NCBI GenBank assembly: GCA_030704615.1
Contig: CM060731.1
Location: forward strand, 77,252,001 to 77,316,000
Source: Takakia lepidozioides
Lineage: Eukaryota; Plantae; Bryophyta
Reading direction: 5' to 3'
Length of the DNA stretch: 64,000 nucleotides
Program-made: the position numbers and the translations under genes
Part shown: piece after piece, positions 6,681 to 61,189 of the stretch
How positions within the stretch are numbered: the stretch's first letter is position 1
Layout of the letters: each line of letters opens with the position of its first letter
The notes under the pieces: generated by a model
What the model saw: only the letters and a program-made list of their open reading frames with translations
The model's database searches: none
Told to the model about the DNA's origin: nothing

Positions 6681-6831
6681 TATAGCACCCTATTCCTGCT
6701 CTACTCTAAACTAGGCTCCGACTTTGAGTCGTCGCTAGAAATAGTGAAAGAGGGGAGGATTTGACAGAGGACCTGACGGAGGAGCCCAGGCTACGGGAAT
6801 TCGGCGAAAGTACCATCAGATTGTACGCGTC

Positions 6832-6864
6832 CATTAAGTTCTTACATTATACCTATTGTCTTCC
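6832..6864. mobile_element. Solo terminal sequence matching the right TIR tip of the 18-kb MULE
   Basis: CATTAAGTTCTTACATTATACCTATTGTCTTCC versus CATTAAGTTCTTACATTATTCCTATTATCTTCC (60565-60597): 2 mismatches in 33 bp. Confidence 0.8.
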
Positions 6865-6961
6865 TGATTTACGTAAGTATAATACGCGTTCTTATAGTGA
6901 GTGCTACAAAAAGTGTTATTTTTTTTTTTGGTTATCTTAGGTTAAAGGGAGTGGACTGGAC

Positions 6962-8495: not shown

Positions 8496-9043
8496 GACTG
8501 GACACCCTATTAACTTTATAGATAAGGAACCAAAAAGTCCAGGCATTAAAAAAAAACCTCTGGTGGGTGCCGTGGGGCTGACCAAGTGCTCTTAAACTCC
8601 TATACCGTAGTAGTGTCTACGTGTATACCCATCTCCATCCGTGCATGTTGCTATAGCAAATTCTAAGCTTGCTTTCAGCAGTACTTTTCCACCAACACCA
8701 AAGATATTAACTCTCAAAGAAAGGAATGCAGACTCAGGCGACAGCATCAAGCATGAATGTGCCTGCAACTTCTGTTGCCAGCTTTCATGGAGTTTCCTTG
8801 AACTATAATTACCAATGTTTTGAGCTTTTGAGCCATTTCTAGTGTACAAGCTGTACACTACACTTACACATTGTAAAGTATACCATGGAGGCTTTGAAGC
8901 TGCGAGCTTCACATTACCACGCCCATTGTAAGCTTGTAAGAAACGAGGGATCCTGGTTAGAAGTAGAAGTCTGGTATTCTTGAGCAACATTTCCTCTTCA
9001 TTTCTGAGTACACCTCCCTGAACAAATATCCCAACATGGGTCT

Positions 9044-28516: not shown

Positions 28517-30733
28517 ATGGCAGGGTTGAATGGTTCACACTTATTGCAATCAGGCTCATACACCATCACCACTTCTTTTGAAAGAGGCCGAAGAGTTGAT
28601 GAGGACTCTTCTGGCACTTTCAGCATGGTGACAACACTCTGTAAGGCAGGGCAACTGATAAAGGCACTGCACATTTTGAATCAAGAAGTCATGTCAGCAG
28701 ACTCCGACACTTACATACTTCTCTTGCGGGAGTGCATCAAAGTTAATGACCCAGACAAGGGAAAGCAGGTGCACAACCACATTATTCAAAGTGGATTCAG
28801 GCCAAACAGCTTTCTACTCAACACCCTTGTCAACATGTATGCCAAGTGTGGGAGTGTAGTGGCAGCACGCCAAGTTTTTGACAAAATGCGTAAGCGAGAT
28901 GTGTTTACATGGACTATAATGATGGCAGGATATGTGAAGCATGGGTATGGTAGGGAGGCTATTGAGATCTATCATCGAATGAAACGGGAAGAGGTGATGC
29001 CCAACCATGTCACATTCGTTTGCGTTCTCAAGGCATGTGCGAGCCTAGGAGCCCTGGAAATGGGCAAAGAGGTTCATGCTGACATAGTCACAGCTGCAAT
29101 TGTGCCGGATGTTATTTTGGAGACCGCCCTTGCAAACATGTATGCCAAATGCGGGAGCATGAAGGATGCATGTCAAATGTTTGAGAATATGGTTGAACGA
29201 GATGTTGTCTCATGGAATGCGATGATTGCTGGATACACTCAGCGTGGGTTTGATAGAGAGGCTGTCGACAAGTATGAGCAAATGATACAAGCAGGGATGT
29301 CTCCCAACAAGGTCACCTTCATTTCCATTCTCACTGCGTGTGCCAACCTGGCAGCTGTGGACAAGGGCAAAGAAGTTCACGCTCGCATCATCAATGCTGG
29401 AATTGCACCAGATATCATTCTGGAGACTGCCCTTGTTGACATGTATGCCAAATGTGGGAGCATTAAGGATGCACACCAAATCTTTGACAATATGGCCCAT
29501 CAAGATGTGGTCTCATGGAGTGCAATGATCGCAGGATATGCTCAGCAGGCGTGTGGTAGGGAGGCTTTTAAGATGTATGAGCAAATGATACAAGAAGGGG
29601 TGACACCCAACAATGTGACATTCATTTCTGTTCTCAATGCCTGTGCCAGCCTGGCAGCTGTGGAGAAGGGCAAAGAGGTCCATGCTGAGATCATCAAAGC
29701 TGGAATTGCGACAGATATCATTCTGGAGACTGCCCTTGCTGACATGTATGCCAAATGTGGGAGCTTAGAGGATGCACGGAACGTGTTCGACAGTATGGCT
29801 CAACGAAATGTGGTCTCATGGAATGTGATGATCGCAGGATATGCTCAGCATGGATGTGGTAGGGAGGCCCTGCAACTATGTGAACAAATGCAGCAGGATG
29901 GCTTGATGCCAGACAATGTCACCTTTGTATGTCTTCTCTCTGCATGTAGCTATGTGGGACTCGTGGATGAAGGCCTTCACTACTTTGATTCCATGAGTCG
30001 AGATCATGGCCTCACTCCCGCAGTGGAGCATTTTGGCTGCATGGTGGACCTTCTTGGCCGTGCAGGGCAATTGCGTGAAGCAGAGAATTTGATTGACACG
30101 ATGCCAGTAAAATCAGATGCTGCTGTATGGCGGGCCTTGCTTGGTGCCTGCAGAGTTCACGGTGATGTGAAGCTGGCAGAACGTGTAGCAAAATGCCTTC
30201 TCAAGTGGGATCCACATCACCCTGGAAATTATGTGCTACTATCAAACATCTATGCCGCGGCTGGCAGGTGGGAGGAGAGAGCAGAGGTGAGAAAATTGAT
30301 GGAGGACAGAGGTGTCAGAAAGGAGCCAGGGTGCAGCTCCATTGAGGTGGACAACCATATGCATACCTTTTTTGTAGAAGACAAGTCGCATCCACAGACA
30401 CAGGAAATCCATGCCGAATTGAACAGATTGCTTGGGCTCATGAAGAAGGCCGGATACGTGCCTGACACTCGCTTTGTATTACATGATGTGGAGGATGAGC
30501 AGAAGGAACTGTCTCTTTGCCACCACAGTGAGAAGCTGGCCATTGCTTTTGGACTCATCAGCACACCCCCTGGTAAGCCTATCCGCATCATCAAGAACCT
30601 TCGGGTTTGTGGTGACTGCCACACAGCTACCAAGTTCATCTCCAAGATTGTGGAGCGAGAAATTGTCGTACGGGATGCCAACCGCTTTCACCAATTCCAA
30701 GGTGGCGATTGTTCTTGTGGGGATTACTGGTGA
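28517..30733 (+). CDS. PLS-class PPR protein with E/E+/DYW deaminase domain (organellar C-to-U RNA editing factor)
   Basis: Repeated P-L-S triplets ([12 protein letters not shown]), P2-L2-S2, PG box [24 protein letters not shown] and terminal CSCGDYW. Confidence 0.97.
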
Positions 30734-40306: not shown

Positions 40307-42423
40307 GAAAGGTGTTGTACACCAAGCGGGCCAGTGACCACTGCATCCGCCCTGCACTCATGTGCTAGAAAGGCAGGCTGCTACTGCACAGTCAAGGCCA
40401 TGCAACATACTCGAGGCCAACAACGGCCGTAAAAGTTGCCGAAATACCCTTCGTCCACAGAGCCACGTGAAAACGATGACAGTCACAAAAGCTTGGATGG
40501 GAGGGTTGTCCTTCCCATTAGCGGAGTTTGTTCGTAAGGGTTTGAAAAAGCCCCGATGCTCCACAGCCGATGAGGAAACCCTCCTCAAACAACCACCAAC
40601 TTTGGCAAATTTGTCTCCACCAGAACTAGGACACGGAACCTGGAGCACAAGGCTAATATGACTATTTACAAAGAGCGCACAAAGGAATGGCGGAGCAAAG
40701 ATCAGGAAGCGATACTGCGAATACTAACTGAGACAGGAAAAAGTACAAGAGGCAGAAGCGGATGGGCCACGGACCGGTTACAGCCCCTGGAAGCGGCTGC
40801 AAGACGAAGAATGGAAGAAAATGGGGAACGGCCTGGGAAAGACGACAGACTACATGCACCAGGGGGGCTAGGGCCCAAACTAAGGACTCTCCCAAGGGTA
40901 CGGTACAAAGGCGTTAAAGCACAAACATTGCTACAGAATAGAAAGCTTCCAAGGGAAAGGAGAAAGCGGAGACAGAAAGCCCGGAGACGGAAGGAACGAG
41001 GCGACCAACACCGACGAGGAACAAAAACGAGATGACAAGACAGCAACCAAGACAGAAATCAGGGCAGGCAACTCCACCATATCAACGACAAGAGAAACCA
41101 GGAAGGAAAAGGAATTGAGATAGAAGAGATATGAGAAAACAGCCCGGGGCCGGTGTGGGATAAGGCAAGGGGCACATGCCCCCAGCGGCGATAACTGCTA
41201 CAAAAAGATGCTCCGCTACTGTGACACCACAAATCACAGACAACAGGAAACGCCAAGACACACACCACAGCAAGATAGGGTCCCAGCCCTAGGCGGGGAG
41301 GGGGAGGACGAGAGGATGCGGCATAAAATGACGAAACTAGAAAGACATTTCATCAACGAGACCCGAAACATTCACACACAAGGCATGTCAATACACTCTC
41401 CATCATCACAACGCCACACCTACAGCGCAACACGGACACTAGAGAACGCAGCGATGCGAGGAAGGCAGAGCATACTCAGAAGAAGAACACGAAGAAGGCA
41501 AAGGGCAAGCAGCAGGCAGGCAGGTAGAGAGAGGCGCCTTCTACCTCGGTAATTTCCCACAATTACTTACCCCACCTTCACCCAGGGTAACGTTTTCAGA
41601 CGTGTGCAAAATGTGACGGGTGTTTTCCCACCGGCTGAACCGGTCTCTATTCGCTCCTTCCCGCTAACATCCGGTAGGAAGGGCTTACGTGTCGACACGT
41701 CCGTCTGCATGCCACCTATATATTTTGGTCATTTATTATTATTATTATTGCTGATATTGAATTCGGCAGATATTTGGGGGTAGCTACTGTATGGATAATT
41801 TCATCATCCTTGGACAACAAATACAAGACAAAATAATACACGCTACCTATAAATCTGGGATTGAAGGGAAAATGAACTCATTTGTTGGCGAGTTCAGTAA
41901 CACCAACGATGTTTGTCATCACGTTTTTCTTTCTGTGTCTCTTGTCTTACATGGCCACACCAGTTAAGGGCTACAGGGATTTGTACCCAGGACTAGTTCA
42001 ACGTTGAGGCGCATGTACGTAGGTAGGTCTGTAGGTAGGTGTATGAATACCCAATTAGGTAGGTAGATAACTACCTACCAACCTTCCTAAGAGACCGAAA
42101 TAAATGAATGTGGCAGTCAGAAATAAACGGATGAATATTGTCCAGACAAGAATGTGAAAATGGATGAATTATCTCTGAATGAAAAGGGACTTAATGGCAG
42201 GTACATTGCGTATGGTCCGTAGGCTAGGGCTAGGGTTTAAGGGGAAGATAATAGGAATAATGTAAGAACTTAAAGCGAGCGCGTCAGGACGGTCCAGCAG
42301 TGACACCCCGTACCGCCGGTTCTCCGCCTCCAGCAGCCGGCTGGGCTGAGTCAATCCCTCCCCACCCCGCTCTCATCCCGCGCGTCGTCGTTCTGCGACA
42401 CTAGTCCGTCGCTTCCACCACAC

Positions 42424-43473
42424 TAACCACCATGTAACCTATGTAACCCTCACCAGGTGTAACCCTATGTAACACCGCAGAGTGTCACCCCTACCCCTAT
42501 GTAACCCTCACTCCATGTAACCCTCTGTAAAACTTTGCAACCCATGTAATCCTCTGTGACCCTCTTAACCCATGTAACCCCATGACCCTCTGTAACCCTC
42601 ACTTGTAACCCCATGTATTCCTCACCACCATGTAACCCTCTGTAACCCATGAAACCCTTTGTAACACCGCAGAGTGTCACCCTCACCAGGTGTAACCCTC
42701 ACCACCATATAACCCTCTGTAACACCGCAGAGTGTCACCCTCACCCCTATGTAACCCTCACTCCATGTAACCCTCTGTGACCCTCAGTAACCCTCACCAG
42801 GTGTAACCCTCTGTAACACCGCAGAGTGTCACCCTCACCCCTATGTAACCCTCACTCCATGTAACCATCTGTAACCCATATAACCATCTGTAACCCATCT
42901 AACCCTCTGTAACACCGCAGAGTGTCACCCTCATCCCCATGTAACCGTCACTCCATGTAACCCTCTGTGACCCTCTGTAACCCTCACCAGGTGTAACCCT
43001 CACCACCATGTAACCCTCTGTAACACCGCAGAGTGTCACCCCCACCCCTATGTAACCCTCACTCCATGTAACCATCTGTAAAACTTTGCAATCCATGTAA
43101 TCCTCTGTGACCCTCTTAACCCATGTAACCCCATGACCCTTTGTAACCCTCACATGTAATCCCCTGTAACCCTCACCACCATGTAACCCTCTGTAACACC
43201 GCAGAGTGTCACCCTCACCCCCATGTATCCCTCTGTGACCCTCTGTAACCCATGTAACCCTCTGTAACACCGCAGAGTGTCAGCATCACTCCATGTAAAC
43301 CTCTATGACCCTCTGTAACCCATGTAACCCTCTGTAACCCGTGTATCCCTATGTAACACCGTAGAGTGTCACCCTCACCCCCATGTAACCCTCACTCCAT
43401 GTAACCCTCTGTGACCCTCTATAACCCTCACCACCATGTAACCCTCTGTAACACCGTAGAGTGTCACCCTCAC
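42424..43473 (-). repeat. Left subterminal modular array (TGTAACCC core), part 1
   Basis: Modules TGTAACCCTC, CCATGTAACCC, CACCAGGTGTAACCC and GTAACACCGCAGAGTGTCACCC; reverse complement of the right array. Confidence 0.95.
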
Positions 43474-44064
43474 TTGCAAAATGAATGGTAAGGGTTTAGG
43501 GATAAATGCTTAAGGGTCTTTTAGGGTAAAGGGTTTAATGTAAAGGATTTTACTAGGATAAAGGTTTACTAAGGTAGGGGTTTTGGTTTAAGTTAGAAAT
43601 GGACAAACAAACATGGAAGACCGTTTGTCGCTAGACACAGACTCGCTTAGAGGTCCAGAAAAATGATGAGAACATGAGAGGTATTAGTTAAGGAGTGGCA
43701 AATTGAAAAGTATGGCAATAATGATAGGGTAAGGGTCCTCTTAGTGGGATACCTCAATTGGAGACTTGGCTTGAGTCAAGTGCAAGCACTGAGAGACGGA
43801 CTGGAATTGGCGCAATAACGAGACATTGGAAAAGAAAGACTCCAGGGGTTGTGCCAGCATTTTTTTTTTTTGGTGCACTGTCTGTTTTGTAAGCCAGAAT
43901 CCCCCGCACGAATATTTGTAGATGAACAAAATGTACAGAAGTGCAGAGTCCAACACGTCAAAAAAAATAAAATGAACGTCCACTGCTCACTCGGCGGCGA
44001 GAATATTTCCCCAGTATTGGTCGTATTGTTCCATTACACCCCGGTAATGATCGTCAAGCAACAT

Positions 44065-44858
44065 TCATTTGGTCCAAAAATCTCTGTATTTCTTAATACC
44101 ATTTTTGATGAATGACTGTTTTTCGGAGGAGTCGTCCCCGACTCCCAATATCGGTCTTCTTGGAATGGCATCTGGATCTTTTTCAGGGAGATTTGGAGTC
44201 CTATCAGGGTTGGATTTCCACATCTTAACGCTGGAGTTTGTATGAAGCCACTCCGAATCAGTAGCTGACTTCTTGTACTTCAAAATGGGCCAGCCATCCG
44301 CTTCCTTAAAAAACCGAAAGACATGCATATCTGAGATCCCGACCAAAGCCTCATTTCCATCAAGAATACAACACTTAACAAACTTCTTGAAGTTGGGAAC
44401 CTCCTGAATAATTAGAGGAATGAATTGCATATCTTGGGAGATCATGAATGACCTCATCAAATCCAATGTAGGTACTGCGTTCTTTTAGCTTCTTCGAGAG
44501 ATAACTAAAGAATCCGTCAATATCCTCATGCGTGTGCCCGACCATGAGAAAACCAAGTTGGATCTCTTCAAAGACATCTTTGGCAGTAAGGAGGGATAGA
44601 AAAGCAAGCATCCATCTGTTCTTATTGTCCTTGGAAGAGTTGTCCAGCAAATAAAGTCGTCTAGGAAGTGGTCGAGCACCATGTTTATCTTGCGGCCTGC
44701 AAGGTTTCAGAGCCTCCAAACATCTCGATTTACCTCTCATGAGCGTTTCAAAAAAATCATTTTGAACTTCAGTGTCGAAAATATTCCTGGATTCCCGGCA
44801 TGTCGACTTTTCCAGTTGGCGCAGGCACCGAGCCAGCGACCCAATTGTGAAGTTTGAG
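44065..44858 (-). pseudogene. Captured fragment of a Sola-like (DUF7869-type) DDE transposase, frameshifted
   Basis: SNFTIGSLARCL...RPLPRRLYLLDNSSKDNKNRWMLAFLSLL...FEEIQLGFLMVGHTHEDIDGFFSYLS. The coding frame starts exactly at the array junction, with a frameshift near 44465. Confidence 0.75.
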
Positions 44859-45397
44859 TTACCCTCACTCCATGTAACCCTCTGTAACCCTCACCAGGTG
44901 TAACCCTCACCACCATTTAACCCTCTATAACACCGCAGAGTGTCACCCTCACCCCCATGTAACCCTCACTCCATGTAACCCTCTGTGACCCTCTATAACC
45001 CTCACCAGGTGTAACCCTCTGTAACTCGTGTATCCCTCTGTAACACCGCAGAGTGTCACCCTCACCCCTATGTAACCCTCACTCCATGTAACCCTCTGTA
45101 ACCCTCACCAGGTGTAACCCTCACCACCATATAACCCTCTGTAACCCATGTAACCCTCTGTAACACCGCAGAGTGTCACCCTCACCCCCATATAACCCTC
45201 ACTCCATGTAACCCTCTGTGACCCTCTGTAACCCTCACCACCATGTAACCCTCTGTAACCCGTGTATCCCTCTGTAACACCGCAGAGTGTCACCCTCACC
45301 CCTATGTAACCCTCACTTTATGTAACCCTCTATAACCCTTTGTAACCCATGTAACCCTCTGTGAACCTCTGTAACCCATGTAACCCTCTGTAACTCT
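44859..45397 (-). repeat. Left subterminal modular array, part 2 (resumes after the insert)
   Basis: Same modules as 42424-43473. Confidence 0.95.
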
Positions 45398-45565
45398 ACC
45401 TCGTGTACATCATACACGTGTAAACTTTGCGACGGCCGAATGGAGGTTGAAATGGAGGCCGAAACCCTAATTTGCTCTCTCCATCTGTTTTCCAGATTCC
45501 TAGCTCGCTCGTTTTTTTGCTTTGGGGCATCAGCTTTCTGCAATTCCCGTGGCGCCCAATCGGCT

Positions 45566-45940
45566 TCACACATCAATGCGAAAGATTTGTAGTTCATTCA
45601 GTTCAGTATCGTCCTCCCAACAACATACAAGACAATGCTTTCCGCGCAGCGATCCGGCAAATCTATTACTACGGTTTCCTCTACGATTGATACGGTTGTC
45701 TCTATCCTTTTTATTTCTCAATATCATTCTTGTTGTTTTGTCACCGTCTGGAAAGGGTTTTGTTTCTTTCGGTCTAGCCATGCAAGCAGCCGCTCATTTG
45801 ACGGGGTGCCCATTCACTCTCCTCTCGTGTATCTTTTGTTCACACACCAGCCGGGGCAGCCTACTCATCGTTATTCTGGATGCAATATGTATCGAATCCT
45901 GCATGTTCTGCAAGCACTGCCAACCGGTTACATGTCTGAT
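45566..45940 (-). pseudogene. Degenerate inverted paralogue of the zinc-finger exon at 46961
   Basis: LAEHAGFDTYC...EQKIHERRVNGHPVK*AAACMARPKETKPFPDGD aligns with EHEHATMIAYC...EVKVDKSRLNRHIVDGTAACMARPKGTKLFPDAE. Confidence 0.65.
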
Positions 45941-45962
45941 GGTTTATATTTCGCTTGTGTGC

Positions 45963-46492
45963 TATGGTTACACACAGGGGGTTACACGGTGTTTTCTTTC
46001 TCAATACATGGTGGCTTGGTAGACGGTTTAGTAATGGAGGTTTAGATGGGGTTGACATATTTGATGGGTTACGTGGATGTTGTGCTCGCGGAGCCACATA
46101 GGCTAGGGTTACATGGGTGGGGCGATACGTTGACCATGTTTACCTGGAGGTTGCATACTAATGGTTTGATATGACAGGGTTACATCGATGTTGTGTTCAA
46201 GACAAGTCTGTCACCAACACTGAAGTGTTATGGTTACACACAGGGGGTTACACGGTGTTTTCTTTCTCAATACATGGTGGCTTGGTAGACGGTTTAGTAA
46301 TGGAGATTTAGATGGGGTTGACATATTTGATGGGTTACGTGGATGTTGTGCTCGCGGAGCCACATAGGCTAGGGCTACATGGGTGGGGCGTTACGTTGAC
46401 CATGTTTACCTGGAGGTTGCATACTAATGGTTTGATATGACAGGGTTACATCGATGTTGTGTTCAGGACAAGTCTGTCACCAACACTGAAGT
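45963..46492. repeat. 266-bp tandem duplication inside the MULE
   Basis: Near-identical copies start at 45963 and 46229 (TATGGTTACACACAGGGGGTTACACGG...CACCAACACTGAAGT). Confidence 0.9.
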
Positions 46493-46960
46493 CTGTCTCC
46501 AACACTGAAGTCACATAGACTAGGGGTACATGAGGTTGTGACGAAGGGTTACATCATATGTGGGTACATGACAGAGGGTTACACTCGACGTGTCTCACAT
46601 GCGGGTAACGGCTGGTTTGTCGCGCTCACAAGTGTAGGGTTACGGTACACTCCGCTATTCCAGGTGACACCGGGATTGCAACTCATATACATGTGAGTCA
46701 GTGCGGATATAATTGATTGCAAGCCGCCAGATTTTAATGAACCGCCGTCTTTCGCTTAACCGACGTGCCTTACGGGTGACATCTAGCTAGCTTCATTCTT
46801 CGTTCTTTGATCATTGTTCAGTTTTTCCCTTCTCGCAGCAGTTTCCTATTCTTCCTGCACTCCTTGTTGTGCGTGCTCCCTGCTGTGCGTTCTTCGGAAT
46901 TCTCTTGGTCTTGTCTTGCTCTTGCTCTTCTCTTCTCTTCTGTCAGCTTGTTCTTTTGCC

Positions 46961-49900
46961 ATGGCTGATTGTTATCTGTTCCCTGAAGAGGCTACTATTC
47001 CATTTGATCACTTGAAGAGGGATGGCGAACGAGTTCGCTTCTGGTACACTGAGCATGAGCATGCTACAATGATCGCGTACTGCCACACCAGGTGTAGAGA
47101 GGCCAAGGTGGAGGGAGCAAAGGGCCGGCCTAAGTTCAAATGTCCTTACTGTGGGGAAGTAAAGGTAGATAAGAGTAGATTGAATCGGCATATTGTCGAT
47201 GGAACGGCCGCATGTATGGCCAGACCGAAAGGAACAAAACTGTTTCCTGATGCGGAGCTCAAGCATGCCATGGTTGTTGAAAATGTGGTGAATTCTGTTC
47301 CAGCTTCTGCTGTTGATGCATATCATGCATGGATTCTGCAAAATATGGTGGCTTTGGGTGAGATTGCAGATCCTATTGAAGTGCCTGCTGTTGTACCTTC
47401 TTTGGCTACTTCTGCTACAGAGGTTCCATCTTCTGGTGCTCATGCTGTTTCTGTCCCTGGTCCTTCTGTTCGGCAGGTTCCTAACGAGAGAGACAAGCGG
47501 TGATTGAGCCCGCCTCTACATGTCCCTATTGCAAAGAAAATCAACATTGGAAACCGGGGAAATCGGAGCTCAAGGTTCATCTTGCGAAAGTGAACTCCAG
47601 GCTCAATCCTTCTGCTACCACATGGCCTTATTCCTCAGTTCCCATTTCCGAAAGTCAATGAGAAGGGGTTTTGGCCGGCATTCCAAGCATTTGTTGCGCG
47701 AGGCGAGGGCGCAGTCCATGCGACAGCTGCAAAATCAAGTTGAGTTCTATCGACGGACAATCAAGTTAGATTCCCTGCCATTTCTCTGTTTTTCAAATTT
47801 CGAGCTGTTGTCTATCCGTGTAACCCTTTGTTTTACCCCCCCCGTCTCTCTTGTGGCGTGTAACCCAGAGTGTAACCCACCTACAGAGGACCCCTTTTAA
47901 AAATCCCTATGGTGTGTAACCCACCTCTGTGTAACCCCGTGTAGCCCACCTTCCTTGTAACCCATTTTTCATGTGTAACCCCTCACGCTGTATTGCGCAA
48001 GGAGCTCGACATCATCTTAGAAGCGATGATATAGAGAGTGTGGTTGATGCCCACAAGGCGTTTACAGCCTAGCCGGATCATGGTCCGTTAATGATAGCGG
48101 AATTGAATCGGGTGAAGGAGTATTTAGAGAGCATAGGGCATCCTGATATGCCAAAGCAGAAAAAGAAAAAAGGTGGAAGACTTACACGGTCCATCGAGAG
48201 AGCCAAGCCTCACATGATGATGACACGATGGACGAACCAGCTCTTGGCAATACCGACCTTGACGATGCCAGAATTTCAAATCCTCTTGTCATCACTATTA
48301 CTATAGATGAAATCGAAGGTTTGGTTGTTCTAGATCCGATGGAATTCACTTGCGATTTTGCGGAAGGATTGATCAGTCAAATGGAGAATCTCACCAAACC
48401 GCACATTGGACCGCCACCACTCCTTTTGAGAATTCTGGCCCACAACGATGTAAGAAATCATGGCAGGTCAGTTTCCCAAACGCATCCCAGGTTGGGGTTC
48501 ACGACTGACCTTCTGGAAAGTGCTCTTACGGTCTCAAAGGTGAAGGACCTGGTCGATGAGAATTACGGTTTTAGTCTGATGTACTTTGCACAACCTGGTG
48601 ACGGAATTGCGACCTTGGATTCTGAGCTCGAGGACTTAAGATCGAGTTTGAGTACAGAAGAGTGGGGTGACATGTCAGTTAAGATCAATGGAGCTATACA
48701 GTTTTGCAAGGCAAGCCGTCGTCGCGCCGCCCACCACTTTGCGATCCATCAGAAAGAATCGTTTATCCAGCTTTGGTGTTGTGGCCTCCTCAGCGAATCA
48801 CCAACAAAAATGGACTTCAATGCGCGTTTGGACATCTAGTATATGAGAGACCTTGGGTCTGTAGTGCCTTGGTATCTCTGTAAGTGTTACTCCATCCACT
48901 GTCACCCCTCTCGTCGTGTAACCCCTTTGTGTGTAATCCTGTAATCAGTGTAACCCTCACTATGTGGAACCCTGTACTCAGTGTAACCCTCGCTGTGTGT
49001 AACCCTGTAATCAGTGTAACCCTCGGAGTATGTAACCCTGTAATCAATGTATCCCTAATGTTACCCCTCGTTGTGTTACCCTAGATTTGTTACCCTCTCG
49101 TTGCGTAATGCAAACTACTGTCTCTAACAGGGTGGTGTAACCCACATCGTCTAATCCGAACCACTGTCTTGTCCTAGTCAGTATAACCCTTACATAGTGT
49201 AACCCTTGCACTTTCAAAAACCTAGTTCCACGACTAAAAACCTTTGTCTTTTCCCCGATGCAGATGAGTCCGAGCTCATGACCAATCAAGTCGCCAATGC
49301 GTTCAAAAACCTTTTTGAGGCTCAACGTGAGCTTCACGAAGTTGTGTATGGGGCCCCTCCACAATGCGATACAGGGGGCGCGCAGACGAGTGATGGGCCC
49401 TCTGTGTTATAGGATGAGGAGATGGTTAAACCTCGTCTTCATTCAATTTCCGCCCCGCAAAGCGACGATGTACATGACGAGGACATCATTCCAAGTCAAT
49501 CTGCCGTTGTATCTTTGTCGCAGGTTGGTGAATTGTACTCAACCCAGCTGCACTTAGGGGTGAACCTAGCAGACTTGATGCGGGATTTGCCCGTGAATTC
49601 TGATACTGATACTGAAGATGATACATCAAGGTGGAACACCCAAGTGCAAACCTCTTTGTCCGCAGCCCCAGTCATTTCTTTTAGAGGTCTTAACCGAAGA
49701 ACCGGGGACCCGCTTGACAGAGTCTGTGTATGACTTTGAATCTGGAGATGCTGGGTTGAACCCTCCATGCAACAATGTAAGTATTTGTGAGGATCATGTG
49801 GTCAACCTCTCTAAGAATGACACTGTTCGAATGATGCAGACCGAAGATCCAAATCATTTCGCGCCACAACATGTCACATTGGAGGAGGTGGTCAGTATTG

Positions 49901-52447
49901 AGGGTGACATTGTCCGGGGGATTGAGCAGACAGACAGTCACCGAGCCTTCGTGGGTCACATTGATGCGGAGGGTGACACTGCAAGGGGAGGAGGCCCTAA
50001 AACCGAGGGTTACACTGCACCTGAGGGTGACACTGCGCAGAAAGGAGCAACAGGGAAGGAGGGTTACACTGCACCTCAGGGTGACACTGCGGATACCGGT
50101 GTGGCTGACACTACTGTGAGGGACATTGTCGTGGGTGACACACCATTGCCCGTGAACACTGCAACTTCCGTTGAGAGTGACATTGACATGGGTTACACTG
50201 GTAGGGGTGACACCCCATAGCCAACCCACATGGCAGATGTCCGTGAGTGTAACACTGCCATGGATGACACTCCACTACCATTAGTCGTGGAGGGTGACAC
50301 TCCTTTGCCATGGCCACTAGTCGTGACGGATGACGCTCTTCCGCTAGTCAACATGGTCTTGGAGGATGACAGTGCGGAGAAGGGCGACACAATCAAGGAT
50401 GGCATTGAGGAGGTTGATGCAAAGAAGAGTGACATTGACATGGGTGACACGGGGAAGGGTGTCACCGAGGAGGTTGTCAGTTGGAAGGGTGACACAGAGC
50501 AGGGTCACACTGAGAAGCGTTTCACTGTGGAGAGTCACGAAGAGAATGATGTTGCGGAGCATCGTGACACTGAGAAGAGTGACACTGCCAAGGGTGACAC
50601 ACATAAGATTGTTACTAAGCAGGGTGACACTAGGAAGGAACCCGATGAGAAGGGTGACACTGCGAAGAGTGACTCTGATAAGGCGGCCAAAGAGAAGGGT
50701 GACACCGAGAACAGTGACATTGAGAAGGTAGCCGAAGAGAAGGGTGACACTGAGATGCGTGACACTGAGGAGGTAGCCGAAGAGAAGGGTGACACTGAGA
50801 AGAGTGACACTGAGGAGATAGCCGAAGAGAACGGTGACACTGAGAAGAGTGACACTGACAAGGTAGCCGAAGAGAAGGGTGACACTGAGAAGCGTGACTC
50901 TGACAAGGGGTCTGAACAAAAGGGTGACACTAACAGGGGCAACACCGAGGAGGTGAGTTGTGACACTTCTGCCCTTGGTCAGTCACCTCCCCAGCACGTC
51001 TCAGACGAGGGAGTGCAGTCTTCAGCACTTGCAGCAAACTCAGAACAAGGCACCTCTGGCCCAGAAATTCCCCCTACCGGCGGCATTGTCACCTCTGGCC
51101 CAGAAATTCTTCCTACTGGCGGCATTGTTAGGGTTGCAGAGAATCCCAGGAGGTCAAAATGGCCGCCTGCTCAAAGAAAGCGGTTGGCTGAACCCCCTAG
51201 CGCTGACAAAGAAGTACATGTTCTTGTCGCACCCAAAAAACAGCGAACCAAATCGAAAGGCAAAAGTGCAGGGGTCTCCGAGGTTGACGTTGTCCAGCAG
51301 CAAGAGGTCCTTGCCAAGCACTTGCGGGAGCGTTCGAGGTACCTCATTGTACTTTGATCCTCTCTGATTGCGAATATTGATTATAACTCTTGTATGATGC
51401 ATCGTAATGTTCGTAATGTGCGGTTTTTTGTGCAGACTAAAACAACGGTACTTGACGAAGTTCAGAATGGTGTCGGACCCTCCTGGGGCGCCCGAAGTGA
51501 AGTTTTATTATGGCAATGTCTTCGTGACTTCTACCCCGTTACAGTTTTACTTGGAAGAGACAGATTTTGAGCCGATGTATAAAATAAGAGCAACTGTCAC
51601 AGATGCATTGCTCTCAGGTTACAACAAACTTCTGGAGGCCAAATTGTTTAAGGCTATCGCACCTGAGTTTGTCATCTGTGCTCCTTTCCAGTGGCATGTC
51701 ATGCGTACCAATTAATGGTAATGATCTGCAGACGCTATTCGGGTTGGTGCAAGAATGGTACACTCAGGATGCCCGAGGGATGGTGTTCACAAAGAATCGA
51801 GATCTTGTGGACGTGGTTGTCATCCCTATTGTCTTCGAGTAAGTAATTTGAGTGTTGACTGATCATGTTGGGTTACACTCCTCTGTTCTACACTGAGTTG
51901 CACTAGTTTGGATTTGCACTGCTGACTAGTTGTGTTACACCGTTTAGAGTTACAGTACAAAGGGTTACACTACTGGGTTACACCACAATGGGTTTCATTG
52001 GAGAGTTTTTTTTCTATTCTGACGTTACGGCTTTGTTTGTGTTGCAGTGATCACTGGAGTGTTGTTGTTTTAGAGCGCCGAGGTCGAATAGTACATTTGG
52101 ACTCCCATAAAACCATTGCCCGACCCAAACTCATTGAAGGAATTTTGCGAAATTTTGCCATAGCGTTCTTTGATTGCATGCCTGGATCTGATGACTTCAG
52201 TTGCGTCATGGAGAGGATGGAATGGTTTAAGGCCAGTGTCCCCCAGCAACGGAGCTGTTGGGAGTGCGGCTATTATGCACTTTGTTTTGTGCAATTTTAC
52301 TTGAAGTGGAAGTTCAATGTGAAAACCACAGAAGATCGAACCCGTCATAGGCGGGCGTTTACTGCAAGTTGGTTCGACGAGTCAACCATGATAGCTTCCC
52401 GTACTCATATGATTAATTGGCTGTTTAACTCTTCTCAATGTAACTAG
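46961..52447 (+). pseudogene. MULE cargo gene: N-terminal CPYC zinc fingers, acidic Gly-Asp-Thr repeat region and C-terminal Ulp1/C48 SUMO-protease domain; disrupted by stops and frameshifts
   Basis: CPYCGEVKVDKSRLNRH....C and CPYCKE...KVHL; KGDTEKSDTEEVAEE repeats; VVVIPIV..DHWSVVVL..IVHLDS..VPQQRSCWECGYY (His-Asp-Cys plus Gln). In-frame TAG codons at 49410 and 50218. Joining these pieces into one gene is inferred. Confidence 0.75.
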
Positions 52448-52542
52448 CAGCAGTGTAGCCCGATCCATGAAACCCCTATTGCATGCAAATTGTAGTGTAA
52501 ATTACTGTGTGACTCAGAACATTGTAACTTCTAGCCGTGTAC

Positions 52543-54053
52543 CTGATAGCATTGATTTCTGCGTCTGCATCGTCGATAACAAAAGCATTTGGCCTCCAAT
52601 CTAGTTTGCTCTGAAGAAGTCGGTCGCGAAGACGTTTCATCCAGGGGCTCAGGTCAGTTGTTTTATTTCTCGCTGATATAATATAAGCAACAGGTATGTC
52701 GTTGAGCCATTCGTCGAACACCATCATGGTATACATTGGGAACTGTAATGTCACAATGGTACAAAAATGAATAAGGTGAGTGTTGTAATATTGGAAATAG
52801 TTGCATGGCACTCACATTTCAGAATGCAATGAAAGGTAAAGCGTGACACGAATACCTTATTTTCGTTGGTCTCAAATGTTGCATCGCAGGATACTACACA
52901 GTTGTGTCCCAGGTCGATCATTTTCTGTTTTTGCCACTCCGTTTGTATTCCAATCACGAACTTCAAATCACCCGCCACTGACGCTGTCTCTTCATGGTAG
53001 AAGAAGACGCTTTCAGGATTGCTATCGATCCACATACGTACACTTTGTGCATCATCTGGATGTTTTTTGTAACTCTCAATCGCAAGCTTGTCGGCAATGT
53101 TTCTCACGTCGTACTTGAACAAGAAACAATCGCGACTCCACTCCATGCCTGGCTGAGACGCACAAGCTTCCTGGAGCTGTTGAGTGTGTTGTGTCATAAT
53201 CATAGCTGGAGATAGGCCACTACGAAGACTATCGACGATCCACTGTTTCATATCTTGGCTGAGACGAGGGGCATGCACGAATCGCGTGAATGGGAAGAGG
53301 GGTCAGCTGAACCATGACATGGTTTTCCTTTTGCATCCACATGCTGTTTCTGGAAGTATGTGATGATTGCCAACTCTGGATCTAGAAAACACTGGCCAAC
53401 TTTGAAGCTATATGTACACCCACGTTTGTATGACTCTCCGAAATCCACTGCCTTACGTCTGATTCGCTTGACTGGTTTTTGATTATCAGAGGCTGCTATC
53501 GGTTTATCTTTCTTCTTCACAATCGGCGGGTCTGTGCACCTATCTACCGGGCCGTAGCAGCAGTGGTACCTGCAAAGAAAGCATACAAAGCGAGGAGGGT
53601 TATCGCCATATACGACTTTGCTAGGCCAGCAGAAAGAAGTGGGGCTGGGAATGTTATACAACCCTCGTAAGTGACTTACTTATGTCACTGACGATAACTG
53701 TTTGCACGCGGTGTCGTCAGATCTGGCAACTCACGGTACCTTCGATCTTGAACATAAAATTGGGTCTTCCCATCCACTCTACTCCTTTCTCCCTCCAGAA
53801 AATCAGGAATGCGAGACCATGGAACGACAGCTACTTTGATGGATATACGTTTCCCTTTTCCGTGGGAAACCTGGCGTATCCAACGGAGGTTTGTGTAATT
53901 GAAAAACCCGTCTATGGGTAGCTGTAGGATGCATTTCAAATGAGATACCAAATGCTGCAAATGACAGAGTTATCCCGCCTCGTCTTTCAAACCATTTGAT
54001 TCCAATGCTGCTTTGCGTTCCTCGTCTAGCACCTTCACGGCAGCACATGCCAT
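52543..54053 (-). pseudogene. MULE transposase of the SWIM-type (At1g60560/At4g13970-like) clade; frameshifted and 3'-truncated
   Basis: VPWSRIPDFLEGE, YHCCYGP, KRGC.YSF, QHVD..G.PCHG, DDAQSVRMW, VFFY, FVIGIQTEWQ, CDATF, PMYTMMVFD..IPVAYII and FVIDDADAEINAIR. There is a frameshift near 53285, and no further exon fits before the convergent Ulp1 stop. Confidence 0.85.
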
Positions 54054-54344
54054 TACCGGCAACAGTACCACCAGTACAGTACAAATCGCAGAACACACAC
54101 GGGCAACACAGCGGAGCCCTCGGGACCGCACGACGTCTGCGCACCTGGTGAAAATGACGCGCGATGATGGAGTTACACGTGGGTTTTGATGTCACCGAAT
54201 CGTGTAACCCAGGTTTGAATTCAAAATATCTGACACCTCTCGGAGCCCGCCAATTTTCGCCGGGCACCAAAGGGCTACACGAACAGGGGTGACATGCGTT
54301 GGGGATAAAGGATGGGGTGACACGAGCTAGGAGTGACACGATCG

Positions 54345-57300
54345 GGTGTTACACGGAGGGGATTGACACAATATCGGGGTTACATGGTGGGGTTACAATG
54401 TGAGAGTTACACAATGAGGGTTACACGAGGCGGAGTTACAAGGGCTGACGTGCAGAGGGTTACAGGGATGATGGGGTTACACGAGGAACAGGAGTTACAC
54501 GGAGAGGGGTACATGGGATAACATGATACAAGCTTGCATTGGGGTTACACGATGCGGGTTACATATGGTGGGGATTACATGGGATCACATAATGAGAGGG
54601 TTACATGATACGGGATAACATGAAATGAGGGTTACACCCCGCGGAAAAACAGAGGATTACATGGGTTACAAATGGTTACAGAGGGTCATGGGGTTACATG
54701 GGTTACAGAAGGTCATAGAGGGTTACATGGAGTGAGGATTACATGGGGGTGAGGGTGACACTCTGCAGTGTTACAGAGGGTAACATGGGTTACAGATGGT
54801 TACATGATGGTGAGGGTTATAGAAGGTCACAGAGGGTTACATGGGTTACAGAGCGTCAAAGAGGGTTACATGGATTACAAAGGGTTACAAAGGGTTACAT
54901 GGAGTGAGGGTTACATAGGGGGTGAGGGTGACACTCTGCGGTGTTACAGAGGGATACACGGGTTACAAAGGGTTACATGGTGGTGAGGGTTACAGAGGGT
55001 CACATAGGGTTACATGGAGTGAGGGTTACATGGGGGTGAGGGTGACACTCTACGGTGTTACAGACGGTTACATGGGTTACAAAGGGTTACATAGAGTGAG
55101 GGTTACATAGGGATTAGGGTGACACTCTGCGGTGTTACAAACGGTTACATGGGTTACAAAGGGTTACATAGAGTGAGGGTTACATAGGGGTTAGGGTGAC
55201 ACTCTGCGGTGTTACAGAGGGTTACACCTGGTGAGGGTTATAGAGGGTCACAGAGGGTTACATAGATTGAGGGTTACATGGGGATAAGGGTAACACTCTT
55301 TAGTGTTATAGAGGGATACACAGGTTACAGAGGGTCACATGGGTTAGAGAGGGTCACAGAGGGTTACATGGAATGAGGGTGACACTCTACGGTGTTACAG
55401 AGTGTTACATGGGTTACAGAGGGTTACATGGTGGTGAGGGTTACACCTGGTGAGGGTTATAGAGGGACACAGAGGGTTACATGGAATGAGGGTTATATGG
55501 GGGTGAGGGTGACACTCTACGGTGTTACAGAGGGTTACATGGATTACAGAGGGTTACATGGTGGTGAGGGTTATACCTAGTGAGGATTATAGAGGGTCAC
55601 AGAGGGTTACATGGAGTGAGGATTACATGGGGGTGAGGGTGACACTCTGCGGTATTACAGAGGGATACACGGGTTACAGAGGGTTACATGGGTTACAGAG
55701 GGTCACAGAGGGTTACATGGACTGAAGGTGACACTCTGCGGTGTTACAGCGGGTTACATGGTGGTGAAGGTTACACCTGGTGAGGGTTATAGAGGGTCAC
55801 AGAGGGTTACATGGGGGTGAGGGTGACACTCTGCGGTATTATAGAGGGATACACGGGTTACAAAGGGTTACATGGGTTATAGAGGGTCACACAGGGATGG
55901 AGTGAGGGTGATACTCTACAGTGTTATAGAGGGCTAGATGGGTTAGAGAGGGTTACATGGTGGTGAGGGTTACACCTGGTGAGGGTTACAGAGGGTCACA
56001 TGGGTTACAAAGGGTTACAAAGGGTTACATGGAGTCAGGGTTACAAAGCGGTGAGGGTGACATTCTGCGGTGTTACAGAGGAATACACGGGTTACAAAGG
56101 GTTACATGGTGGTGAGGGTTACACCCGGTGAGGGTTACAGAGGGTCACAAAGGGTTACATGGAGTGAGGGTAACATGGGGGTGAGGGTGACACTCTGCGG
56201 TATTACAGACGGTTACATGGGTTACAGAGGGTAACATGGTGGTGAGGGTTACATCTAGTGGGGGTTAAAGAGGGTTACATGGAGTGAGGGTTACATAGGG
56301 ATTAGGATGACACTCTGCGGTGTTACAGAGGGTTACATGGGTTACAGAGGGTTACATGGTGATGAGGGTTACACCTGGTGAGGGTTATAGAGGGTCACAG
56401 AGGGTTACATAGAGTGAGGGTTACATGGGGGTGAGGGTAACACTCTTTAGTGTTATAGAGGGATACACGGGTTATAGAGGGTTACATGGGTTAGAGAGGG
56501 TCACAAAGGGTTACATGGAGTGAGGGTGACACTCTGCGGTGTTAAAGAGTGTTACATGGGTTACAGAGGGTTACATGGTGGTGAGGGTTACACCTGGTGA
56601 GGGTTATAGAGGGTCACAGAGGGTTACATGGAGTGAGGGTTATATGGGGGTGAGGGTGACACTCTACGGAGTTACAGAGGGTTACATGGGTTATATAGGG
56701 TTACATGGTGGTGAGGGTTATAGAGGGTCACAGAGGGTTACATGGAGTGAGGATTACATGGGGGTGAGGGTGACACTCTGCGGTGTTATAGAGGGATACA
56801 CGGGTTACAGAGGTTACATGGGTTACAGAGGGTCACAAAGGGTTACATGGACTGAGGGTGACACCCTGCGTTGTTACAAAGGGTTACATGGGTTACAGAG
56901 GGTTTCATGGTAGTGAGGGTTATAGAGGGTCACAGGGTTACATGGAGTGAGGGTTACATGGGGGTGAGGGTGACACTCTGCGGTGTTACAGAGGGATACA
57001 CGGGTTACAGAGGGTTACATGGGTTACAGAGGGTCACAGAGGGTTATATGGAATGAGGGTGACACTCTGCGGTGTTATAGAGGGTTACATAGGTTATAGA
57101 GGGTTACATGGTGGTGAGGGTCACAGAGGGTTGCATTAGGGTTACACGACGTGGGTTACATATGGTGGGGATTACATGGGATCATATAATGGGAGGGTTA
57201 CATGATGTGGGATAACAGGGAGTGAGAGTTACACCCCGCGGAGTAACAGAAGGTCATGGGGTTATATGGGTTATAGAGGGTCATAGAGGGTTACATGGAG

Positions 57301-60300
57301 TGACGGTTGCATTGGGGTGAGGGTGATACTCTGAGGTGTTACAAAGGGTTACAGAGGATTACATGGTGGTGAGGGTTACAAAGGGTCACAGAGGGTTACC
57401 TGGGTTACAGAGGGTCACAGAGGGTTACTTGGGTTACAAAGGGTTACAGAGGGTTACATGGAGTGAGGGTTATATAGGGGTGAGAGTGACACTCTGCGGT
57501 GTTACATAGGGATACACGGGTTAAAGAGGGTTACATGGTGGTGAGGGTTAGAGAGGGTCACAGAGGGTTGCATGGAGCGAGGGTTACGTGGGGGTGAGGG
57601 TGACACTCTGCGGTATTACAGAGGGTTGCATTGGTTACAGAGGGTTACATGGTGGTGAGGGTTCCACCTGGTGAGGGTTACAGAGGGTTACATGGTGGTG
57701 AGGGTTACAGAGGGTTACATGGAGTGAGGGTTACATAGGGGTGAGGGTTACAGAGGGTTACATGGAGTGAGGGTTACATAGGGGTGAGGGTGACACTCTG
57801 CGGTGTTAAAGAGGGTTACATGGGTTATTGAGGGTTACATGGTAGTGAGGGTTACACTTGGTGCGGGTTATAGAGGGTCACAGAGGGTTACATGGGGGTG
57901 AGGGTGACACTCTTCTGTGTTACAGAGGGATACACGGGTTACAGAGGGTTATATGGGTTACAGAGGGTCACAGAGGGATTCATGGAGTGAGGGTGACACT
58001 CTACGGGTTTACAGAGGGTTACATGGTAGTGAGGGTTACACCTGGTGAGGGTTATAGAGGGTCATAGAGGGTTACATGGAGTGAGAGTTACATGGGGGTG
58101 AGGGTGACACTCTGCGGTGTTACAAAGGGATACACGAGTTACATGGGGGTGAATGGACACTCTGCGGTGTTACAAAGGGATACACGAGTTACAGAGGGTT
58201 ACATAGGTTACAGAGGGTCACAGAGGGTTACATAGGTTACAGAGGGTCACAGAGGGTTACAAGGAGTGAGGGTGACACTCTGCGGTCTTACAGAGGATTA
58301 CATGGTGCTGAGGATTACACCTGGTGAAGGTTATAGAGGGTTACATGGAGTGAGGGTCACATGGGGGTGAGGATGACACTTTGCGGTGTTACAGATGGAT
58401 ACACGAGTTATAGAGGGTTACATGGGTTACAAAGGGTTACATGGTGGTGAGGGTTACAGAGGGTCACAGAAGGTTGCATTGGGGTTACACGATGCGGGTT
58501 ACATATGGGAGGGTTACATGATGCGGGATAACATGGAGTGAGGGTTACACCCCGCGGAGTAACAGAGGGTTACATGGATAAAAAGGTTACAGAGGGTCAT
58601 GGGATTACATGGGTTACAGAGGGTCACAGAGGGTTACATGGGGGTGAGGGTGACACTCTGAGGTGTTACAAAGGGTTACATGGGTTACAGAGGGTTACAT
58701 GGTGGTGAGGGTTACAAAGGGTCAGAGAGGGTTACATGGAGTGAGGGTTACATAGGGGTGAGAGTGACACTCTGCGGTGTTACAAAGGGATAAACGGGTT
58801 AAAGAGGGTTACATGGGGGTGAGGGTGACACTCTGCGGTGTTACAAAGGGTTACATGGTCGTGAGGGTTCCACCTGGTGAGGGTTACAGAGGGTTACATG
58901 GAGTGAGGGTTACATAGGGGTGCAGGTGACACTTTGCGGTGTTACAAACGGTTACATGGGTTACAGAGGGTGACATGGTGGTGAGGGTTACACCTGGTGT
59001 GGGTTATAGAGGGTCACAGAGGGTTACCTGGAGTGAGGGTTACATGGGGGTGAGGGTGATACTCTGCTGTGTTATAGAAGGATATACACGGGTTATAGAG
59101 AGTTACATGGGTTACAGAGGGTCACAGAGGGATACATAAGGGTGAGGGAGACACTCTGCGGTGTTACAGAGGGTTACATGGTGGTGAGGGTTATACAGGG
59201 TCACAGAGGGTTACATGGAGTAAGGGTGACACTCTGCGGTGTTACAGAGGGATACACGAGTTACAGAGGGTTACATGGGTTACAGAGGGTCACATAGGGT
59301 TACATGGAGTGAGGATGACACTCTGCGGTGTTACAAAGGGTTACATGGTGGTGAGGGTTACAGCGGGTTACAGGTGAGGGTTACATGGTGAGGGTTACAG
59401 AGGGTCATGGGGTTACATGGGTTAAGAGTGTCACAAAGGATTACATGGGTTGCAAAGTTTTACAGAGGGTTACATGGAGTGAGGGTTACATAGGGGTGGG
59501 GGTGACACTCTGTGGTGTTACAGAGGGTTACATGGTGGATAGGGTTACACCTGGTGAGGGTTACAAAGGGTTACATGGGTTACAGAGGGTCACAGAGGGT
59601 TACATGGAGTGACACTCTGCGGTATTACAGAGGGTTACATGGATTACAAAGGGTTACAAAGGGTCACAGAGGGTTACATGGAATGAGGGTTACATAGGGT
59701 GGGGGTGACACTCTGCGGTGTTACAGAGGGATACATGGGTTACAGAGGGTCACAGAGGGTTACATGGAGTGACACTCTGCGGTATTACAGAGGGTTACAT
59801 GGATTACAAAGGGTTACAAAGGGTCACAGAGGGTTACATGGAATGAGGGTTACATAGGGTGGGGGTGACACTCTGCGGTGTTACAGAGGGATACATGGGT
59901 TACAGAGGGTTACATGGTGGTGAGGGTTACACCTGGCGAGGGTTATAGATGGTCACAGAGGGTTACATGGAGTGAGGGTGACACTCTGCGGTGTTACAGA
60001 GGGATACATGGGTTACAGAGGGTTACATGGTGGTGAGGGTTACAAAGGGTTACATGGAGTGAGGGTTACATAGGGGTGAGGGTGACACTTTGCGGTGTTA
60101 CAGAGGGTTACATGGGTTACAGAGGGTTACATGGTGGTGACGGTTACAGGGGGTTATAGGGGGTTACAGGTGAGGGTTACATGTTGATGGTTACAGAGGG
60201 TCACAGAGGATTGGGTTGCAAAGTTTTACGAGGGTTACATGGAGTGAGGGTTACATAGGGGTGGGGGTGACACTTTGCGGTGTTACAGAGGGTTACACCT

Positions 60301-60370
60301 AGTGAGGGTTATAGAGGGTCATGGGGTTACATGGGTTTCAGAGGGTTGCATAGGGTTACATGGTGGTTAG
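54345..60370 (+). repeat. Right subterminal modular array (~6 kb; GGGTTACA core) with higher-order structure
   Basis: Modules GAGGGTTACA, TGGGTTACA, TGGTGGTGAGGGTTACA, TGGAGTGAGGGTTACA, CCTGGTGAGGGTTA and GGGTGACACTCTGCGGTGTTACA. Confidence 0.97.
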
Positions 60371-61189
60371 TGGTTACTGGCGGACTGGTGGAAGCGGCGG
60401 ATTGGTGTCGCAGAACGACGACGCGCCGGGGGCGACGACGCCGATGGGATGAGAGCGGGGGTGGGGAGGGATTGACCGAGCCCAGCCGGCTGCCTTTCGA
60501 TGGCTGCCGGAGGCGGAGAACCGGCGGTACGGGGTGTCAGGGCTGGACCGTCCTGACGCGCTCGCATTAAGTTCTTACATTATTCCTATTATCTTCCGGT
60601 TTAAGGCAAGGGTGTTTAGTGTGCTTTGCTTATTATTAACAAGAGCGAAGGTCGATCGTCCAGAACCGTCAGATCCGTCCTCTAAGGAAATATGTATATT
60701 ACCAACCATTGGATAGAGTTCTGAGTTCCAGCTAGGTGATTCTGGGCTCAAATCCTGCGACCTGGTGTGGTAAGGTAATTAATTAATTGAAGGGTCTCAA
60801 AGTTTGGAACGTCTCTGATTTTTCAAAATGCACCCCTCCCCACACATGGACGTGGATGGGCCCTTGGCCGACCTGCACGCAGTTGCCTAGCCCAGGGTGG
60901 GTCTCATGTATATTGGGTCTATCGTCAATGGGGTGGGTCCACCTGGGCCTTTGGGTCAAGTGACACGGTAAGTTAGGCAATGAATTCACAATTTATTTAT
61001 CTTTTCCCGTGCAGTCCTATTGTGAAGAAACTTGGCAAATGGAATCATGGGTCTCCAGTAGCGACTTTCTTAAGAAATTTGGAAAACAGCACGAGTGGCT
61101 ACAGAGTTTTGCAAAAAAATAGCCGTACATTCTGTTCATCCATTGAAATTAGGATAGAATCATCCACTTCTGTACTTTAATCCATTTAT

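Follow-up and report, generated by a model that had tools for sequence, protein, structure and literature searches.

What is the 18-kb structure that lies within a 64,000-nucleotide (nt) stretch of contig CM060731.1 of Takakia lepidozioides (positions 77,252,001 to 77,316,000; hereafter the window, whose own numbering is used throughout), and why do long G-rich arrays that look like telomeres stand at both of its ends? The original prediction had described this structure as a Mutator transposon built like a mini linear chromosome. Our results suggest that it is a foldback-type Mutator-like element (MULE) of a high-copy family, present here as a non-autonomous copy, that its array-bearing arms would act as multivalent binding platforms, and that the likeness of these arms to telomeres is coincidental. 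We consider this explanation, taken as a whole, to be probable.

The extent of the element was determined from its ends. Positions 42243-60597 form one element of 18,355 bp, in which the left end and the reverse complement of the right end can be aligned from the first base. Outside the arrays, the terminal inverted repeats (TIRs) measure 178 nt on the left (42243-42420) and 228 nt on the right (60370-60597). Their alignment extends from end to end and then onward into the arrays, with 177 matches and 8 mismatches in the aligned blocks (95.7% identity) and three larger indels of 13 to 19 nt. The outermost 31 nt of both TIRs are AT-rich and identical save for the final base. The matching tips of about 180 to 230 bp that had been predicted are thus present at that size, but their supposed GC-richness does not apply to the first 31 nt. 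On both sides the element is bounded by the predicted perfect 9-bp target site duplication (TSD), GGTTTAAGG, which agrees in 9 of 9 positions (42234-42242 and 60598-60606; chance expectation, about 4e-6). Neither the terminal motif nor the GC-rich TIR has a further copy in the interior. As the TSD flanks exactly two matching outer termini and there are none inside, the two ends belong together and derive from a single insertion event. A TSD of about 9 bp (range, 8 to 11) and long TIRs (at least about 100 bp) are features of the Mutator superfamily, and the element has both. The insertion target itself (42214-42242 and 60598-60620) is TAGGG/TTTAAGG-like.

Inside the TIRs lie the two arms. The left arm is C-rich on the + strand and consists of two parts (42421-43475 and 44861-45397; 1,592 bp), and the right arm is G-rich on the + strand (approximately 54650-60370, with a looser motif zone from approximately 54290; 5.7 to 6.1 kb). 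When measured again, the predicted mirror-image arrays of about 1.6 and 6 kb, together roughly 40% of the element, retained these sizes. The GC skew is about -0.5 in the left arm and +0.5 in the right arm, so the G-rich strand does run 5' to 3' outward in both. TIRs that consist mainly of inverted subterminal tandem repeats, in arms as unequal as 1.6 and 5.7 to 6.1 kb, are features of foldback elements.

The arms are built around one word. The 8-mer GGGTTACA occurs 213 times in the window, always within the element and never outside it, and 71 of the 72 copies of its complement are also within the element. It is the most frequent 8-mer in both arms, at about one per 30 nt. The core has the form GGTNACA (GGTTACA in 61% of cases), and its copies are spaced 10, 9, 16-17 or 25 nt apart by only a few types of spacer (GAG, TG, TGGAGTGAG and TGGTGGTGAG). 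We counted 92 cores in the left arm (58 outer and 34 inner) and 344 in the right arm (span 54500-60375), a total of 436. The same 8-nt core is found in at least four unit types whose spacers differ, which suggests selection on the word. A dyad module, GTGACAC-N-GTGTTAC, is found 23 times in the right arm and 12 times in the left arm. Tandem Repeats Finder gave periods of 10, 19 and 29 nt in the arms, with higher-order units of 77 to 304 nt, and showed a local duplication, at 98%, of a 160-bp unit of the right arm (59560-59914). When the right arm was compared with itself by megablast, nothing was listed at 96% identity or above, and the evidence for this local duplication is therefore that of the Tandem Repeats Finder rows. 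Segments of opposite arms are 87 to 97% complementary over 140 to 314 nt but out of register, indicating that the arms were reshuffled and expanded independently. As had been predicted, the arms are prone to form G-quadruplexes (G4) when judged by the number of motifs: of 27 canonical G4 motifs across the window, 25 fall in the arms, and all 20 on the + strand of the element are in the dense right arm. This richness follows from the GGG within the arm word and does not imply a function.

The element harbors two genes. The accessory gene includes a weak C2H2-like zinc-finger open reading frame (ORF) (46814-47503, +; E 6e-4, under the Pfam cut-offs), an ORF with an acidic Gly-Asp-Thr repeat (50230-51357, +) and an Ulp1/C48 protease domain (51932-52447, +; PF02902, 24.3 bits against a cut-off of 20.7). 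A Pfam scan of 20 interior ORFs found no VANC-type and no other above-threshold DNA-binding domain, the ORFs being unspliced pieces among which a divergent protein could escape. The other gene is a transposase remnant made up of three adjacent reading-frame pieces (53622-52542, -), which were searched separately. The query was a 183-amino-acid (aa) exon (52754-53302, -). Exhaustive HMMER comparison of this exon with 1.84 billion representative proteins identified 365 relatives, 107 of them at E<=1e-10; a word-index protein search with the same exon had returned nothing. Ten full-length relatives (682 to 1,048 aa) were scanned for domains. Four of them (P0007, P0029, P0036 and P0049) carry the Pfam MULE domain PF10551 above its cut-off. 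The ZSWIM1-3 RNaseH-like domain is above its cut-off in three of the ten (P0029, P0036 and P0049), four more display only a sub-threshold ZSWIM match, and three have no match. In these relatives, the MULE and ZSWIM domains are placed directly after the stretch that matches the window. A MURA/MULE-type DDE transposase is thus assigned through homologs, and an Ulp1/C48 domain lies inside the element, in agreement with the original assignment to Mutator with Ulp1 cargo. The two genes are convergent, with their ends about 30 nt apart, and each starts beside an arm.

A complete catalytic domain, as expected of an autonomous copy, was not found. Homology to the transposase ends at about residue 378 of 825, and about 54% of the closest full-length relative is missing. 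The C-terminal halves of eight homologs had no match in the window at E<=0.4; as a control, two such halves match each other at E 3e-29. From the stop in homology and the lack of a C-terminal match, we infer that the transposase is without half or more of its length, including the last catalytic residue. Judged by its sequence, this copy is non-autonomous and would be incapable of moving by itself, a point that the original prediction had overlooked. Among the homologs, the full-length P0007 is from an AT-rich plant chromosome, where neither arrays nor long TIRs surround it, and the closest short homologs, P0001 and P0002, are on contigs of 1.4 to 2.6 kb, too short to show architecture.

Reads were used to see whether the family is repeated. 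The left junction was compared with four public runs from this organism, in which the contigs are short and depth is a rough guide. In run X1 the summed depth was about 56 in the flank, about 64,000 in the bin of the 31-bp tip, about 1,200 to 14,700 in the GC-rich TIR and up to about 217,000 in the bins of the arm. In run X2, 18 contigs end exactly at 42242 with unlike flanks beyond, and an independent sample, X5, supplied one further contig that ends at 42242 with an unlike flank. The sequence of X5 (1.75 Mb) extends over part of the flank but does not reach across the junction. Contigs that stop at 42242 with unlike flanks, together with the high depth, indicate that the position of the end is exact and that the family is highly repeated. 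About 23 contigs have the tip in common and diverge after 42273; the 31-bp tip is therefore common to subfamilies whose subterminal sequences differ. A third copy of the tip in the window (6834-6864, -; 2 mismatches) ends a different element, the subterminal part of which is unrelated and includes a short GACGATGACGTGGCG-type array at 6599-6679. No partner end for this tip was found in the window, and the element at 6599-6864 may be either a solo end or a relative of the Pack-MULE type. A fragment with pentatricopeptide repeats (PPR) is located about 500 bp inside this end (6070-6336, -; Pfam PF01535, 1.5e-7). Metagenome scans with the terminal motif and with the commonest 24-nt arm word gave 0 matches each.

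The arm word is not confined to the arms. It also occurs in interior blocks of alternating orientation (45926-54630), on the G strand at 45.9-46.8 kb and 54.3-54.6 kb and on the C strand at 47.8-49.2 kb. The coding Gly-Asp-Thr repeat (49.9-50.9 kb) carries it on the G strand as GGTGACAC. Between 45400 and 54650 we counted 51 core matches on the G strand and 23 on the C strand, against about 2 expected per strand; about 24 of these interior matches come from the GGTGACA repeat of the coding sequence. The terminal arms hold about 80% of the cores. Immediately inward of the left arm, a 266-bp unit that contains GGTTACAC words is tandemly duplicated at 98% (45959-46492). The features of the element are collected in Table 1.

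Table 1. Coordinates of the features of the foldback-type MULE in the window
Feature	Position	Strand	Remarks
Left TSD copy, GGTTTAAGG	42234..42242	.	
AT-rich 31-bp terminal motif, exact element end	42243..42273	+	Common to right end; 2 mismatches with different element at 6834-6864
Left TIR, GC-rich subterminal part, subfamily-specific	42274..42420	+	
Outer left arm, 58 GGTNACA-type cores, 9 modules GTAACAC-N-GTGTCAC	42421..43475	- (G-rich strand)	
Unrelated 1.4-kb block splitting left arm, DUF7869 fragment	43476..44860	-	
Inner left arm, 34 cores	44861..45397	-	
Accessory gene region, read inward from left arm	46814..52447	+	ORF pieces
MULE-type transposase remnant, read inward from right arm	52542..53622	-	About residues 70-378 of 825-aa homolog
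Right arm, inner transition zone, cores at looser, irregular spacing	54290..54649	+	
Dense right arm	54650..60369	+	
Right TIR, non-array part; terminal 31-nt motif at 60567-60597	60370..60597	-	
Right TSD copy, GGTTTAAGG	60598..60606	.	

The block that splits the left arm, which the original prediction did not mention, encodes a DUF7869 protein fragment (44375-44740, - strand; Pfam E 1.9e-26). A nested transposable element was ruled out, as the block lacks TIRs and a TSD and occurs only once in the window. It starts with degenerate plant-telomere-like words, with TTTAGGG at 43495 and 43520, and capture, filler DNA and rearrangement are candidate origins.

In the explanation that we propose, the whole 18.4-kb unit would have been inserted once, generating the 9-bp target duplication. 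Each end has three layers: the 31-bp terminal motif, likely the site of cleavage and recognition; a GC-rich, subfamily-specific TIR of about 150 to 200 bp; and a kilobase-scale irregular array in which GGGTTACA recurs every 17 to 30 bp or so between a few kinds of spacer. The gene for a putative zinc-finger/acidic/Ulp1-protease protein and the transposase gene are each read from an arm toward the middle, where they face tail to tail. As the transposase gene appears to stop after the region of the second catalytic aspartate, transposase would have to be supplied in trans. By analogy with Muta1, the arms would be bound multivalently by an element-encoded DNA-binding protein, most likely the transposase. 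Slippage or unequal exchange may lengthen and shorten each arm independently of the other, which would account for the asymmetry between 1.6 and 5.9 kb.

Muta1 of Aedes aegypti is a type 2 foldback MULE in which a terminal motif is followed by nine 12-bp subterminal repeats (PMC5499845). In that system, more repeats lead to more binding of transposase, cleavage needs a repeat, and excision in yeast rises with the number of repeats; one natural non-autonomous copy carries seven repeats at one of its ends but only three at the opposite end (PMC5499845). The Takakia element resembles Muta1 in its TSD of 8 to 9 bp, in its short terminal motif followed by subterminal repeats of the same orientation separated by linkers, and in its unequal ends. 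It differs in scale, with 92 and 344 cores, arms of 1.6 and 5.9 kb and a length of 18 kb, whereas Muta1 has nine repeats, a 145-bp TIR and 3.2 kb, and it also has several unit types and an extra gene. The proposal that the arms are massed platforms for transposase was already part of the original prediction, and this half of it fits the published Muta1 experiments (PMC5499845); the alternative half, that they protect ends in the manner of telomeres, is not supported.

That alternative has the arms cap an excised linear element, or recruit telomere proteins to it, much as in a mini-chromosome. It would be in keeping with a G strand that runs 5' to 3' toward both ends, with the concentration of G4 motifs in the arms and with the heptamer GGTTACA, which equals the core of the fission yeast telomere (bioRxiv 10.1101/047837). 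However, when the right arm was parsed for fission-yeast-type units, all 210 were isolated, with 0 adjacent pairs, and they cover only 1,683 of its 5,721 nt (29%). The arms contain 0 occurrences of TTTAGGG, so the element has neither head-to-tail G-rich units nor a match to the host repeat, assuming the usual land-plant type. The arrays are subterminal, with 178 to 228 nt of non-G-rich TIR outside them, the interior blocks present the word in both orientations, and MULEs, which transpose by cut and paste, do not require a capped intermediate (PMC5499845). The arms of any inverted repeat are mirror images, so the chance that their G strands run outward is 1 in 2, and this polarity amounts to one bit of information. 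We regard telomere mimicry as very improbable. From the earlier comparison with fission yeast rather than plant repeats, the shared heptamer and the absence of TTTAGGG from the arms survive, but the cores are spaced motifs. The mini-chromosome framing itself is not supported, in view of the spaced, subterminal arrays, the two orientations inside and a polarity equivalent to a coin toss. It is hardly credible that the structure is an artefact of assembly or a composite, with arms that were collapsed or mis-joined or with two elements side by side. Short-read contigs that break at 42269 and do not span the arms, as well as the foreign block within the left arm, would agree with this. Against it are the perfect TSD at exactly two outer termini, the lack of further termini inside the element and a window free of Ns.

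The remaining alternatives concern the role of the arm word. VANC, the accessory protein of Arabidopsis VANDAL21, binds a 9-nt word (YAGTATTAY) in same-orientation, non-coding tandem arrays and removes silencing (PMC5735166). This raises the possibility that the accessory protein (zinc finger, acidic repeat and Ulp1) reads GGGTTACA arrays in arms, introns and spacers and thereby keeps copies free of repressive chromatin. As in VANDAL21, non-coding DNA is packed with one short word, the accessory gene has peptide repeats, and word arrays are known to evolve fast in VANDALs; the word is unique to the element and forms same-orientation blocks in the non-coding interior well beyond expectation. 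The accessory gene with the possible zinc finger adjoins an arm. In the non-coding DNA of VANDALs, the targets of VANC evolve as tandem repeats and binding is set by motif density (PMC5735166), and the subfamily with the same 31-bp tip has another subterminal repeat, so that arrays and tip evolve separately. But no VANC-type protein was found, the zinc-finger match is under the cut-offs, VANDALs are without long TIRs, and most of the words here are in the terminal arms, which is where the transposase sites of foldback MULEs lie; part of the interior signal is the coding GGTGACA repeat. We consider anti-silencing of this kind unlikely. We hold it to be quite unlikely, too, that GGGTTACA and an element-encoded reader, either the zinc-finger/acidic/Ulp1 protein or an N-terminal domain of the transposase, constitute a co-evolving, family-specific recognition system in a non-seed plant. 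Such a system would be an independent counterpart of VANDAL and VANC, in which the kilobase-scale arms also serve transposition and sister subfamilies keep the tip and swap the array word. Finally, the arms may have no role and be selfish or neutral minisatellite expansions in the TIRs of dead copies. The copy is non-autonomous, its arms are very unequal and one is disrupted, and the local 98% duplications point to ongoing tandem growth. In Galileo, it is the non-autonomous copies that have the longest TIRs (PMC3573991), and satellites have arisen from foldback repeats (PMC4079207). However, a core that persists across at least four unit types, that is the top 8-mer of both arms at about one per 30 bp and that recurs in unlinked interior blocks resembles selection on a word rather than the copying of one unit. 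We judge passive satellite growth to be improbable.

Several observations weigh against the foldback MULE with binding platforms that we favor. The next piece of the element's own transposase, exon C, reaches PF10551 only at E = 0.058, and membership in the superfamily therefore rests on the homologs. We saw no autonomous copy. Internal non-coding blocks and a coding repeat are also filled with the word, and there it is not needed for the binding of transposase to the ends. Read contigs are short, break in repeats (at 42269) and do not span the arms, and the continuity of the 18 kb rests on the assembly. The proposed role of the arms as a protein-loading platform, by analogy with Muta1, presupposes a predicted reader of GGGTTACA.

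Arms of Drosophila FB elements reach several kilobases and grade from 10-bp to 20- and 31-bp units, a gradation that resembles the periods of 10, 19 and 29 nt found here. Foldback elements in general have composite tandem-repeat TIRs, unequal arms and 9-bp TSDs, and mostly belong to the Mutator superfamily (PMC4079207, PMC3169594). FARE1 of Arabidopsis is a plant example (PMC4486113), and Tm1 of nematodes follows the same plan (PMC3169594); in one case, foldback repeats were shown to seed a satellite (PMC4079207). The Takakia element resembles FB, Tm1 and FARE1 in its tandem-repeat TIRs, its variable and unequal arms, its 9-bp TSD and its Mutator affiliation. Unlike them, it resides in a non-seed land plant, its repeat sequences are unrelated to theirs, and it has an Ulp1 cargo and word-bearing introns that are not in their descriptions. 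As unequal tandem-repeat foldback arms are established (PMC4079207, PMC3169594, PMC4486113), the earlier statement that such arms are usually far shorter was exaggerated.

In maize MuDR (4.9 kb), the TIRs are about 215 bp long and lack arrays, and two convergent genes, one of them mudrB, each start beside a TIR. The Takakia element is similar to MuDR in its long TIRs, 9-bp TSD and two convergent genes, and is unlike it in having arrays and an Ulp1 gene rather than mudrB. Ulp1 is a recurrent cargo of MULEs, in either orientation, as in the KI-MULEs of Arabidopsis and in the MULEs of melon, rice and grapevine (PMC2528002). As in grapevine, the Ulp1 gene here is inside the element and opposite to the transposase (PMC2528002); the descriptions of these Ulp1-carrying MULEs hold no kilobase-scale tandem-repeat arms.

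The window also includes ordinary host genes. An intact, intronless gene for a DYW-type PPR protein of 738 aa is located at 28517-30733, and its best named relatives, from Diphasiastrum (a lycophyte), Ginkgo, Cryptomeria (a conifer) and mosses, are 52 to 58% identical. Identities this low imply that the protein collection contains no annotated close relative of the host. A ribosomal protein L27 gene (2954-4697) with two exon-like ORFs (Pfam PF01016, E 2.5e-18 and 6.4e-12) lies at lower coordinates than the MULE end at 6834-6864.

The original prediction had raised the prospect of an undescribed family of giant foldback MULEs. Literature searches with arm words returned primer matches only, and none for a 17-nt arm word; no paper in the collection searched joins moss, Mutator-like and foldback. 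No description of the family was found in that literature, a comparison made without Repbase/Dfam. The family is new, as had been proposed, but the kind is known: the novelty consists of the family, its host lineage (resembling non-seed plants, with DYW-type PPR genes), the scale of its arms and the combination of features, and every single feature has precedent. The element thus shows no new principle. It does provide an example of how far the foldback arms of plant MULEs grow, with 436 cores and about 40% of an 18-kb element given over to arms, which genome annotation would otherwise label as satellite or telomere-like DNA. The length of the arms, the subterminal word and the terminal motif appear to vary independently of one another, which makes the family suitable for tests of the role of subterminal repeats, be it transposase loading or anti-silencing, and it is also suited to the study of how the arms of transposons seed satellites.

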